This document shows positions 638 through 57,325 of a DNA stretch of 64,000 nucleotides, in pieces; the stretch's first letter is position 1; each line of letters opens with the position of its first letter. Source of the DNA: Vitrella brassicaformis CCMP3155 (Eukaryota > Protista > Chromerida); assembly GCA_001179505.1 (NCBI GenBank), contig CDMY01000656.1, positions 186,001 through 250,000 of the forward strand. The letters run 5' to 3'. The notes under the pieces are model-generated. The model had not been told where the DNA came from and did no database searches. It worked only from the letters and a program-made list of their open reading frames with translations. The position numbers were made by a program, and so were the translations under genes.

Positions 638-646
638 AAGCTCGCA
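638..646 (+). promoter_or_regulatory. AAGCTCGCA upstream motif
   Basis: Sense-strand copy ending 70 nt before the ATG at 717. Confidence 0.55.
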
Positions 647-716
647 TCTCGCCGGGCCCCATTTTAAGGCCAGAATTCAGGGCAGAGAATCCCCGTATGA
701 GCGGAATGTCGGCCGT

Positions 717-3187
717 ATGAGCGTGCCGAGCGACGGGAACACGGCCGCCTGCGATGGAAGAGGGCCAGGTGAGGGCTCGGAGGAGGCGAGAGGCAAGCAA
801 GTGGAGATCTTGACGAGGCAAGTCGAGGAGCTGCAGAGGAAGCTGAAAGGGGACACACTGGCGGACGAAAACGACGTACGTCGGGCACAAAACAACAAGA
901 AGAAGAAATCGCGGAACTTACAGCTTCTCTTCTACATGTATCTGTGTGTGTTTTCTCTATCTCTCAGGCGTTACGTTGCCAGATCTTGCAGATCCAGGAG
1001 GACTGGCACGCTGCCCAGGACACCTTCATCACGCTGCAGTCGGTAAGCGCACCGCCCACGCAGCCACAACGAACGCACCCAGTTGACATACTATCTGGAT
1101 CCCCTCTCTCCATCTCACAACGTGCAGAGCCTTCACAAACAGATTGCCCAGCTGACGCACGAGTGGGCCTGCCATCGCCAGCACAGGCCGACAGAAGACC
1201 AACTGTACTCTGTGTCTGTGTCTGTGTCTGTGTGTGTGTGGTCAGGTTGTCGCGTGAGCGTGATGAGAAGGAGCAGGCCGAGTGCAGGGTGCTCTTCTTG
1301 GAGGACCGTGTGAAATTCGCTGAGGACCAGCTGCGTGTCATCGTCGAGCGACTGCGGTGTAAGTATGCCACGTGTGTGCATGTCCGCCCGCCCGTCCACA
1401 CCACACAACTGCTTGCCTTGCCTTCCTCCTTATTCTCTCCTCTCCCCCGTCAGGCGACTTGGCAACGCGTGACGCGACGATTCAGTGTCTGGAGCTGCGG
1501 CTGGGCACCGGCAGCCACATCCCAGGCCCTCCGCCGTTCAACGCGGCGGCATCTGCGTCCTTCCCGCCATCGTTCCCGCCGCCACCAGCACCACCTAATG
1601 TGCACGAGCCGCCAGGCATCTCACCAGCACACGCACTGGATGTGCTTGTGTGTGTGTGTGTGTGTGCAGAGCCAGAGTGACAAGACGAGCAGTAGCGGGA
1701 ACTCGCCAATGAGCGACTCGGCCGACAAGGGGGCGGAGGGGGAGGCAGGCAGCAAGGAGAGAGAGGGCAGCAGCGGCAAAGAGGATGGCGGCCATGCCGA
1801 AGGCGAGAAGTTGACGGACTACCAAAAACTCCAGAGTATGATCAGTGGGGCACGTGATTGATGGATGGATTGATATTTGCTTGGTTGGTGCGGTTCATTG
1901 TCAGAGATACTCTTTGTGCGTGAGGAGCAGCTGGGCCGCCTGGCCACACAGCTCAACGCCACCAACCTGCAGCTAGATAAGGTCAGTGCAGTGAGCCACA
2001 CACGCCTGTCGGATGTATCCGTGTCTGTCCATCGCCTGTCGTCTGTCTATCTGTCTGTCTGTCTGTCTGTCTGTGTCTTCCTGTCCAGCAAGCTCACGAG
2101 ACGAAGCGGGCGCTCGCGGCCATCGAGCAGCTTCGGAATAAGGTAGGTAGAGACCACAACAGGTCCTCTGTACCTGTGTGTGTGCATCTTCGTGTTGTCT
2201 TTTCCGGCCAACCGGCAGAACATAGAGTTGACACATGGCCTGAGGCGCGAAGCACGAGTGCGCGAAGAGCTAGAAAGACGAACAAGGGTACGGGGCACAG
2301 AAAGACCGACCCGGGAGGATGCATAGCTATGCATCCCACCTGTGTGCTGTGTGTGCAGAAGGTGGGTCGTGCGGAGCAACACATGCAGTACCTCATGAAC
2401 GCGTCCTTCCCCGTCATGCTGCCACTGTACGACTCGTCGCCGCCAAGCGTCCCCCCTGCCCGGCCCCCCTCCCACGCCCGCCCGCCCCCTCCCCCTCTCG
2501 CCGAGTACCCAGCCAACACTCGGCCGGCGGCCATCGACACCAATGGCAGTGGCAACAGCGGGCAGCAGGGGCCCTCACCCACCGCCCCACCCACCGCTTT
2601 CCTGTAAGTCTGCCAAATTTCGGATCGATGGATGGATGGATGGGTGTTTACATTCATTCAGCATCCCGCCACACGAGTTCCTGGCGGCACTGAGGGCCGA
2701 GGTGGAAGCCCTGCGCGACCAGGTGGACAGGCAGGCGAGACCTGCACCCGCTCAGGCTCAGGCGCCCCCACCGCTGGCCCACACGCCTCCTTCGTGCGTG
2801 ACGCGGCTGACACGGTCCGACACGATGGAGGAGGGAGAGAGGGAGGGCGATGGAGAGGTGGACGACGGCCCCTCATCGGCGCCGAGCCAGGTCACTCACC
2901 ACGGTCAGCATGAGCAGCCGGCCGACCCAGCCCTGATGTCGTCACGCGTCGTAGAGGAGCAGACCCATGGAGCAGAGTACACACGTAACGGCTGCACCTA
3001 TGGCGGTGGCTCTGGCGATGGCGATGATGATAGTGGCGAGATCGACACAATAGAGGTGACGCTGCTGGCCAACGTGGCTGTGGACGTCCGCGAGGAGATC
3101 GATGTGTGCCCTTTGCAGCGGCCTGGAGAAGGGCATAGGCAGCCCGGGGACAATCACGGGGAGGGCAGGCCGATCGATGGCGGCTGA
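717..3187 (+). CDS. multi-exon coiled-coil hypothetical protein
   Basis: Starts MSVPSDGN. Heptad-like exons (EILTRQVEELQRKLK, EQAECRVLFLEDRVKFAEDQLR, EEQLGRLATQLNATNLQLDK, LRAEVEALRDQV) are separated by GT-AG microsatellite introns. Acidic C-terminus ends at TGA 3187. Confidence 0.7.
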
Positions 3188-3430
3188 TGGGGTAGACAGA
3201 CAGATGGACAAACAAACAACCGGATGAGCGGATTGATGACAGTTTGTCCGCGTGTCCTAGGGTACATGTCCGCTGGTAATCTTGTGTGAGGCCGGGGGGG
3301 AGGGTGCGCCTGCTTGTACATGGCTGGAACTGGACCGACCTTGCCGATCAATCCATGATGGCTAGACCGACCTTATAGCGATGATAAATATGACATCATT
3401 CATGCATGCCGCGGCCAGGAAGGAGCGTAG

Positions 3431-55500: not shown

Positions 55501-57197
55501 GAGTGGCAAGAGGCATGCTGGAGACCACTCTCACCTTCCGGCACTTCGAACAGGCTGCTCAGCAAGCCCATGGCTGCCTGCCCGTCGTCAGGGGCAGTTG
55601 CCTTGTCGCTCCCTCCATGCGAGTCGGCAATGACGGCGATCGCCGACTGCACCAACGCCGTGAGCAGGGAGGAAAGGTCATGCTGCTCTCGGTCCAGCTG
55701 ACGCACAAGAGAAGGCGCGAGCGCAGATAATTGATGGCATTGTGGGTTCTGGCGTACTCACCTGTCCGAGGGCGTCCAGGAGATCGTCCTTCGCCCCACA
55801 CAGCGCCAGCACGCTCTTGCGCGGAATCACACCGCCAACGGGCATACCGTCTTCTCTTTTGGCGGCGTGCATGTCGATGAGCTTGGTGAGCACTCGCAGG
55901 GATGGCACCAGGCCGACAGGCCCGTCGGTGGTCTTGAGTGCGGTCTGGACGAGTGGGTGAATGGCCGACTGAGTGACGGGGAGGGAGAGGGGGGTGGTGG
56001 TGGCGAGGGCGTCCAGGACAGCCAAACATGCTGACATGACGAGAGCAGGATAATGCACTCATTGGATTGGATGAGTGCGTGTATGTGTGTGTGGGCGTGG
56101 GTGGATGTACCTTACCTGCTCTCAGCTCCTTCATTTTGGCGCCTCCCCTTTTGAGGCCACTGATGACCACCTCCAACACCTTGCGCACAAACCCGTCACT
56201 CACCTCTCTTCTCCCAGAACCTACACCAACAACGCGCATCTTTACCTGTGTGCCTATGTGCCTCCGATCCTCTCTCATTTTCTCTCTCTCTCTCTCTCTC
56301 TCTCTGTGTGTGTGTGTGTGTGTGTGTGTCGAGCTCACCAAGGCAATCGCACACGACGGAAGCGAATAGCGTGCAGTAAGGCAGGTTCCTCCTCTTGGGC
56401 TGGATGACGATCCGCTGCAGTGTGGCCGCCATGGCGTCCAGCACCGACAGGTCCCTGCCCATGATGTGGTTGACCAAAGTCGACCGCTTGATCGGCACCA
56501 GGGTCTCCCGCACAGATGACAGAAACGCCCTGCACACCATACAGCGAGGCAGATAAGGATGTGTGTTTGTGTGCGGATGCACCTCTGTCAGGCCCACCGA
56601 CCATTGGCTGTGTGTGGGTATGTTGAGCAGGGCCACGAGTTTGGCGAAGGGGAGAGAGTCGTGGAAGGGCAGGAACACGCTGATGATGTGGTCGGGCATG
56701 TGAGTCTGGATGCTGTGCTGCCGGATCAGATACTCGAGGCAGTGCTGGGCCTGACAGACACCCACACCCACACCCACACATACACCCACACATACACCCA
56801 CACATATGGCCACCACACACACAAAGACACATGCCATGAGTGAACGGTGCAGTGGTGATGTTCTCACCTCCTCGCGCAGCAAGTGCGGCGACAGCAGGTC
56901 CAACAGCTTGCCGACCATCTCGTCCATCTCCCCCGCCTCATCCTCACGCATAAACGACCTGTCCTTCCTCCGGCCCTCAAACACGGCACTCACCTCGCCC
57001 CAGCCGTCTGACTCATGCCCTCCCTCTGTGGCCAGTTCGGCGAAGCTGTTGGCTGCCAGCTCGTGGATCACCGAGTCTTCCACAAACGCCGCTTGTCGGA
57101 AGTCGAAGAGAAGGGAGGGAACGCCTCGCTTTGGCGGCGCGATGATTTGCCGGTCCGTGCGGAGCCGCTGAAGCTGCTTCTCGAGCTCGCTCGGCAT
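46536..57197 (-). CDS. UTP10: U3 snoRNP t-UTP subunit UTP10 / HEATR1
   Basis: N-terminus MPSELEKQLQRL..PSLLFD.RQAA, LLDLLSPHL, AQHCLEYLIRQHSI, FLPFHDSLPFAKLVALL. Long HEAT-like helical exons. BP28CT-like AIADAFACLSAKLTDQQLRPLFIKL. C-terminal SELLDGDDEGVEAVARRWMRHME. Confidence 0.92.
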
Positions 57198-57311
57198 GGA
57201 TGTGGGCAGATGCTGACAGATCTCGCCTTGGCGATGGCTGGGCGAGTCAACAACAAGCAGAACCTGGCAAACAAGCCAAGAGAGAAAGAGGAGATCGCGA
57301 TCGCCGTCTGC

Positions 57312-57325
57312 AAGCTTGGCTCGCA
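57312..57325 (+). promoter_or_regulatory. AAGCTTGGCTCGCA upstream motif
   Basis: 12/14 match to AAGCTAAGCTCGCA; ends 19 nt before the ATG at 57345. Confidence 0.65.

Follow-up and report, generated by a model that had tools for sequence, protein, structure and literature searches.

A 64-kb stretch of the genome of Vitrella brassicaformis CCMP3155, referred to here as the window, contains a short motif, GCTCGCA, that lies in sense orientation shortly before the start codons of seven genes. The window spans bases 186001–250000 of scaffold CDMY01000656.1 (GCA_001179505.1), and adding 186000 to a window position gives the position in the record. A 467-aa open reading frame of the window is matched exactly by a 13-kb Logan contig from run ERR558151, and a search of representative proteins gave a 99% identical protein of 1,217 aa, CEM28664.1 (A0A0G4GGB3), which is encoded on this scaffold. 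Vitrella, a free-living photosynthetic alga of the chromerids, is sister to Apicomplexa and is not itself a parasitic apicomplexan. The window has a G+C content of 56–62%, with many short exons whose G+C content at third codon positions (GC3) is near 0.8 and with abundant CA/TG repeats in its introns. In the Vitrella genome the median distance between genes is 92 bp and head-to-head pairs are in excess, and the paper describing the genome reports no promoter motif (PMC4501334).

Genes and motif copies in the window

The public NCBI gene models, with coding-sequence ranges covering window positions 334–51478, provide 15 annotated ATGs (genes A to O), which served as independent starts. The genome record was the sole entry recovered with the annotated proteins. 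Two further genes, P and Q, have starts of our own prediction, and a second set of 17 starts is that of the present analysis. Most of the head-to-head pairs are separated by spacers of only 81–274 nt. Ten promoter-containing spacers could be defined and seven of these hold the motif (X/A, A to B, C/D, E/F, J/K, L/M and P/Q), while the G/H, I and N/O spacers are without it.

Gene A (unnamed, 554 aa, plus strand, ATG 717) is arranged head-to-head with gene X (minus strand, ATG 286) across a 430-nt spacer. Its motif copy, AGCTCGCA, is located at 639–646 on the plus strand, 70 nt before the ATG. A short upstream open reading frame follows the copy on the same strand at 697–720, with an ATG at 697, a second in-frame ATG at 706 and a TGA stop at 718–720 that overlaps the main ATG at 717 as ATGA. 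Gene B (unnamed, 806 aa, plus strand, ATG 3486) follows gene A in tandem, and the copy in this spacer, GGCTCGCA at 3430–3437 on the plus strand, precedes its ATG by 48 nt. Gene C encodes an EF-hand/LRR protein of 689 aa on the minus strand (annotated ATG 10105) and is head-to-head with gene D (unnamed, plus strand, ATG 10334). The AGCTCGCA copy at 10160–10167 on the minus strand lies 54 nt before the annotated ATG. One in-frame ATG, at 10129, intervenes at a distance of only 30 nt from the motif and would add eight residues. Gene E (RRM, minus strand, ATG 16868) and gene F (IMS, a Y-family polymerase of 732 aa, plus strand, ATG 17143) form the next motif-bearing pair, with AGCTCGCA at 17091–17098 on the plus strand, 44 nt before the ATG of gene F.

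The spacer between the BolA gene (J, 94 aa in the public model, minus strand, annotated ATG 29781) and the CDPK gene (K, plus strand, ATG 30077) contains three copies. The distal BolA copy, in the extended form AAAGCTAAGCTCGCA, is found at 29968–29975 on the minus strand, 186 nt before the annotated ATG and 30 nt before an in-frame upstream ATG at 29937. The proximal copy at 29954–29961 on the minus strand lies 172 and 16 nt from the same two ATGs and is half of a perfect 12-nt palindrome, TGCGAGCTCGCA (29954–29965). The plus-strand half of this palindrome is a AGCTCGCA copy at 29958–29965 that faces gene K across a 111-nt gap without an ATG. Perfect 12-nt palindromes occur in two of the head-to-head spacers, namely TGCGAGCTCGCA in the 139-nt BolA/CDPK spacer and CCGTCTAGACGG at 22543–22554 in the 81-nt spacer between the EF-hand and channel genes. 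The ZIP transporter gene (L, minus strand, ATG 37569) and the RCC1 gene (M, 503 aa, plus strand, ATG 37668) are separated by a head-to-head spacer of 98 nt, in which a AGCTCGCA copy, again in the extended form AAAGCTAAGCTCGCA, is positioned at 37624–37631 on the plus strand, 36 nt before the RCC1 ATG. The last copy of this kind is GGCTCGCA at 57318–57325 on the plus strand, preceded by AAGCTT and 19 nt before the predicted ATG (57345) of gene Q, a histidine-phosphatase-like gene on the plus strand that lies beyond the fetched annotation. Its head-to-head partner across a 147-nt spacer, on the minus side, is gene P (U3snoRNP10/HEAT, 2575 aa, predicted ATG 57197).

The remaining annotated genes are the EF-hand gene G (minus strand, ATG 22508), the cNMP-gated channel gene H (plus strand, ATG 22590), the unnamed genes I (minus strand, ATG 28900) and N (minus strand, ATG 41478), and the acyltransferase gene O (plus strand, ATG 42010). 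A near copy of the motif, TCTCGCA, is found at 22511–22517 on the minus strand, where it overlaps the first ATG of gene G and ends on the A of ATG 22511; an earlier reading made from the sequence only had described it as abutting this start. This near copy is probably a chance match, since one-mismatch variants of GCTCGCA upstream of genes are no commoner than expected and bring in no further genes.

The sequence-only reading had listed eight motif copies at seven genes. All of its coordinates are correct, as are the gaps to the ATGs that it assigned (70, 48, 30, 44, 16 and 30, 36, and 19 nt), so that by its start codons the motif precedes the ATG by 16–70 nt. Its assignments for genes A, B, F and M are identical to the public models, those for genes C and J differ from them, and that for gene Q (57345) falls outside the annotation retrieved. 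Six copies were absent from that reading, five of them within gene bodies (8127−, 10397−, 36194−, 47403− and 62404+); the other, 29959+, faces the CDPK gene and is the opposite-strand half of the palindrome. The 15/15 match of AAAGCTAAGCTCGCA between the BolA and RCC1 copies and the 12/14 match of the phosphatase copy, which reads AAGCTTGGCTCGCA, were likewise reproduced. The extension AAGCT-NN-GCTCGCA is present at these three sites, and the flanks are otherwise without conservation.

The base at −1 is a purine in every one of the nine promoter copies (seven A and two G) and a pyrimidine in four of the five copies within gene bodies (Fisher p 0.005). RGCTCGCA is for this reason the more accurate form of the functional word, and nine of the ten copies of this 8-mer in the window are at promoters. 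The tenth, at 10397–10404 on the minus strand, is the sole RGCTCGCA away from the promoter-proximal zones. It is located within exon 1 of gene D, on the strand opposite to D and in sense orientation to gene C, 267 nt upstream of ATG 10129, and could be either a chance occurrence or an alternative upstream start for gene C.

Each of the nine promoter copies is in sense orientation to a gene within 111 nt. In the six motif-bearing head-to-head spacers and the single tandem one, the motif reads in the sense of one gene and lies closer to it, and the head-to-head partner has no copy of its own, except in J/K, where the palindrome provides both orientations. The first ATG after the motif is in most cases the start codon or in frame with it. 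By Pfam annotation, the genes that carry the motif are functionally unrelated, comprising the Y-family polymerase, RCC1, BolA, EF-hand/LRR and phosphatase-like genes and two unnamed ones.

The start codon of the BolA gene was considered separately. The public ATG at 29781 lies 52 codons downstream of the in-frame ATG at 29937. Over this 52-codon stretch (29782–29937, minus strand) GC3 is 0.81 in frame and 0.47 and 0.49 in the other two frames, and it falls to 0.59 over the next 44 codons upstream of ATG 29937. The contrast in GC3 between the reading frames leads us to prefer 29937; this start is probably correct and the public 94-aa model N-terminally truncated. At the protein level the extension begins with a hydrophobic, signal-like segment and continues with one rich in R and S, and the predicted sequence resembles an organelle-targeting leader. 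A protein search with BolA gave no identical entry, the 94 aa of the public model being too short for the length range of that search.

Positional distribution of the motif

All of the motif statistics are drawn from this single window, the same data in which the motif was discovered, and the expected counts come from dinucleotide-preserving shuffles. Across both strands there are 14 copies of GCTCGCA, with 14.35 expected, and thus no overall over-representation. Promoter zones, defined as the sequence up to 200 nt upstream of a start codon, make up 2,871 bases or 4.5% of the window and contain 9 of the 14 copies; 0.86 were expected and none of 300 shuffles reached nine. In the other 95% of the window 13.97 copies were expected and 5 are present, a count as low as this being reached in only 0.3% of shuffles. 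Since the total is at the level of chance, the signal is purely positional, with promoter enrichment and depletion elsewhere offsetting each other.

The enrichment before start codons that the sequence-only reading had estimated by hand holds within the window when public starts are used. A sense copy is present within 80 nt upstream of 5 of the 15 annotated genes, compared with 0.105 expected from shuffles of the same regions (maximum of three in 2000). Extending the region to 200 nt gives eight sense copies in seven genes, with 0.37 expected. When all 16,384 possible 7-mers were ranked upstream of the 15 annotated starts, GCTCGCA came first, with a Bonferroni-corrected p of 5e-3 for 100 nt and 1.6e-4 for 200 nt. 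It was also the top 7-mer with the 17 starts of the present analysis (Bonferroni p 3e-6). The motif is found at 7 of 18 genes, or about 40% of the genes in the window.

Two other words, CCGTCTC and TCGTCACA, recur in several promoters of the window and fail multiple-testing correction. CCGTCTC is found upstream of genes A and D. Three of the four copies of TCGTCACA in the window are in promoters, at 590–597 (plus strand), 37575–37582 (minus strand) and 37598–37605 (plus strand), and the latter two form an inverted repeat inside the 98-nt ZIP/RCC1 spacer.

Possible roles of RGCTCGCA

Several classes of element were considered and rejected. A TATA-like element at about −30 is ruled out by the gaps of 16 nt (BolA, ATG 29937) and 19 nt (the phosphatase-like gene), which leave no room for a −30 element plus a leader. 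The variation of the gap from 16 to 70 nt likewise rules out a Kozak-type translation-initiation context. A spliced-leader or 3′ splice acceptor would place a G after the motif to complete an AG; this is seen in only two of the eight aligned sense copies, the others having T, C or A. The motif is not the end of a dispersed repeat or mobile element, as the flanks are unrelated except for the 15-mer at two sites and the sole dispersed repeat of the window lies elsewhere. A structured 5′-leader RNA was also rejected, with minimum-free-energy z-scores between −1.8 and +1.1, motif pairing that differs from leader to leader, and no Rfam matches.

We know of no match to GCTCGCA in the full protein-binding-microarray set of ApiAP2 motifs. 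A literature search found no published description of GCTCGCA or its complement TGCGAGC as a motif. RGCTCGCA differs from the apicomplexan gCATGCa (PMC7854901) and from the words CACACA and GTGCAC (PMC11417369), in agreement with the sequence-only reading, which had not recognised it as a described ApiAP2 motif. The Toxoplasma word GCATGC is not concentrated at promoters in the window, with only 2 of its 24 copies located there. The word itself is new, the kind of element is a known one, and RGCTCGCA belongs to no described motif family.

The metazoan initiator has the consensus YYANWYY, in which CA is the usual pyrimidine-purine start dinucleotide, and a palindromic promoter word, TCTCGCGAGA, is known from human. 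RGCTCGCA resembles the metazoan initiator in ending in CA and differs from it in having G at −2; it has the core CTCGC in common with TCTCGCGAGA. The human word itself is absent from the motif promoters, and its two one-mismatch copies in the window (2.7 expected) are not at motif sites.

Closer parallels in arrangement are found among microbial eukaryotes. The INR (YCAYTYY), FPR and DPEP motifs of the oomycete Phytophthora infestans are forward-biased, lie at or next to the start site and no more than about 100 nt from the ATG (Roy et al. 2013, PMC3599244). They occur in TATA-less promoters of 13–18% of genes and were found by over-representation near gene starts, and start-site mapping together with mutagenesis established both their overlap with the start site and their function (PMC3599244). 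RGCTCGCA is similarly short, forward-biased, near the start codon and present in a subset of genes. It differs in being GC-rich where YCAYTYY is AT-rich, in coming from a chromerid and not a stramenopile, and in being known from sequence alone. In Toxoplasma gondii, 44% of promoters contain gCATGCa, which sits about 82 nt upstream of the transcription start and has no known cognate factor (Markus et al. 2021, PMC7854901). Like gCATGCa, RGCTCGCA is a single short word from a related lineage with a large promoter share and a defined position. The Toxoplasma word is palindromic, shows no strand bias and was scored regardless of strand, and leaders in that organism are about 800 nt long (PMC7854901), whereas RGCTCGCA is directional and lies 16–70 nt from the ATG. 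The compact genome of the microsporidian Encephalitozoon cuniculi carries CCC-like and GGG-like signals just upstream of start codons, which help to correct start annotation, and microsporidian 5′ untranslated regions are shorter than 7 nt (PMC2803860). As with the CCC-like signal, RGCTCGCA stands just before the coding start and favours a corrected, longer model for BolA; its sequence is different and its gaps, at 16–70 nt, are not those of the microsporidian signals.

The sequence-only reading had proposed a core-promoter, transcription-factor-binding or 5′ untranslated region element, and taken as a set these three are supported by the position and orientation of the motif, the unrelated genes that carry it and its depletion elsewhere. 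Among them, we tentatively favour a directional, initiator-like promoter element that would overlap the transcription start site or lie no more than about 15 nt away from it and would act, as we infer, at the DNA level. This preference is based on the tightness of the gaps, their variability, the strict orientation, the lack of an RNA fold and the depletion in gene bodies. Such an element would set the site and direction of RNA polymerase II initiation within very short, mostly head-to-head spacers, and the depletion from gene bodies is the outcome that would be expected of selection against cryptic or spurious initiation.

Strict orientation is typical of core-promoter or RNA elements and atypical of ordinary activator sites, and this bears on the two rivals within that set. 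RGCTCGCA might instead be the site at which a sequence-specific activator, for example one of the many chromerid ApiAP2 proteins, binds the proximal promoter of some genes only, and it would not then define the start site. A sharply defined 8-mer found in only about 40% of genes would suit such a site, as would the extended bipartite form AAGCT-NN-GCTCGCA in three promoters, the palindromic double site in another, and the Toxoplasma parallel of gCATGCa, a word that 44% of promoters carry at a set spacing from the start site (PMC7854901). We nevertheless think an activator site rather unlikely, because such sites usually function independently of orientation whereas the promoter copies here are sense to their gene, because a site upstream of the start site would, with gaps of 16–19 nt, push the start site almost onto the start codon, and because the functions of the genes exhibit no common theme. 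An element in the 5′ leader of the mRNA, bound by a protein and influencing translation, stability or localisation, would require exactly the strict sense orientation observed; 16–70 nt before the AUG falls inside any plausible leader, and the first ATG beyond the motif behaves in most cases as expected for one. This role is decidedly unlikely given that no conserved or unusually stable fold is predicted, that conservation does not reach beyond the 8-mer, and that across spacers as short as these a start site lying far upstream of the motif would land in the neighbouring gene.

It is highly improbable that the placement of the motif is a matter of chance or an artefact of ATGs picked once the motif had been seen. 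The overall count does equal expectation, two of the chosen ATGs (10129 and 29937) differ from the public models, and the motif was spotted by eye in data that were also used for testing. With public starts only, however, the five genes with a copy within 80 nt and the first rank among 16,384 words after correction are retained, and the concordant orientation (7/7), the purine at −1 (p 0.005) and the depletion elsewhere (p 0.003) all argue against chance.

A number of points weigh against the initiator-like element that we favour. The coincidence of RGCTCGCA with the transcription start site is deduced from spacing only. The word fits neither the YYANWYY nor the YCAYTYY initiator consensus; with its final A taken as +1, the site alignment places G and not a pyrimidine at −2, and the following bases are not W-Y-Y. 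The leader sequence of gene A has two ATGs, belonging to a seven-codon upstream open reading frame, after the motif and before the annotated start. Should the public model of BolA hold, the two copies of that gene sit 172 and 186 nt from its start codon. The partner genes that have no copy mean that RGCTCGCA is not a universal element, and the prevalence of 7 in 18 genes comes from one 64-kb window, so the genome-wide value may differ.

A bolder version of the initiator-like proposal, which we regard as possible but doubtful, is that RGCTCGCA is Vitrella's main start-site selector. It would then be a lineage-specific, strictly directional core-promoter word in at least one third of genes, read by a dedicated factor (perhaps a protein of the ApiAP2 type that the basal machinery has taken on), orienting bidirectional spacers of about 100 bp and purged from gene bodies against cryptic initiation. 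To our knowledge, almost nothing is known of promoter architecture in chromerids, which are free-living algal relatives, as a sister group, of the malaria and Toxoplasma parasites, and core-promoter logic is poorly defined across the whole group. RGCTCGCA would offer a way to identify the factor responsible for start-site choice, a rational basis for Vitrella expression cassettes, and a means of testing how ultra-short bidirectional promoters acquire direction. It could also aid start-codon annotation, as for BolA, where it favours the longer protein with a leader typical of organelle targeting.

Other features of the window

Pfam scans of the long open reading frames and single exons of the window were mostly without match, and Rfam and tRNA scans of the window returned no matches. 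In a protein search, the conserved portion of the channel protein matched only the channel protein itself and no paralogous loci, and a metagenome scan using exon 1 of the CDPK gene gave no match. The open reading frame at 444–1043 matched a single Logan contig of 1,061 bp, which lies within the window, and twenty ATG-initiated open reading frames close to the two window ends were absent from that collection.

The window contains one inverted dispersed repeat of about 900 bp and about 80% identity, with its two copies at 10784–11663 and 40345–41307. The repeat spans the 3′ halves of D (P0007, 305 aa) and N (P0008, 233 aa), two unnamed genes that are paralogues, together with downstream DNA. 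A protein search with gene D recovered D itself and N alone, and 5.8 billion proteins yielded no other relatives. The public annotation places no gene in 11435–14800 or in 32838–35803, each about 3 kb long and rich in simple repeats of the (CA)n and (CAGA)n type. One of these gene-free stretches holds a low-complexity open reading frame of 232 aa (12330–13028, minus strand).

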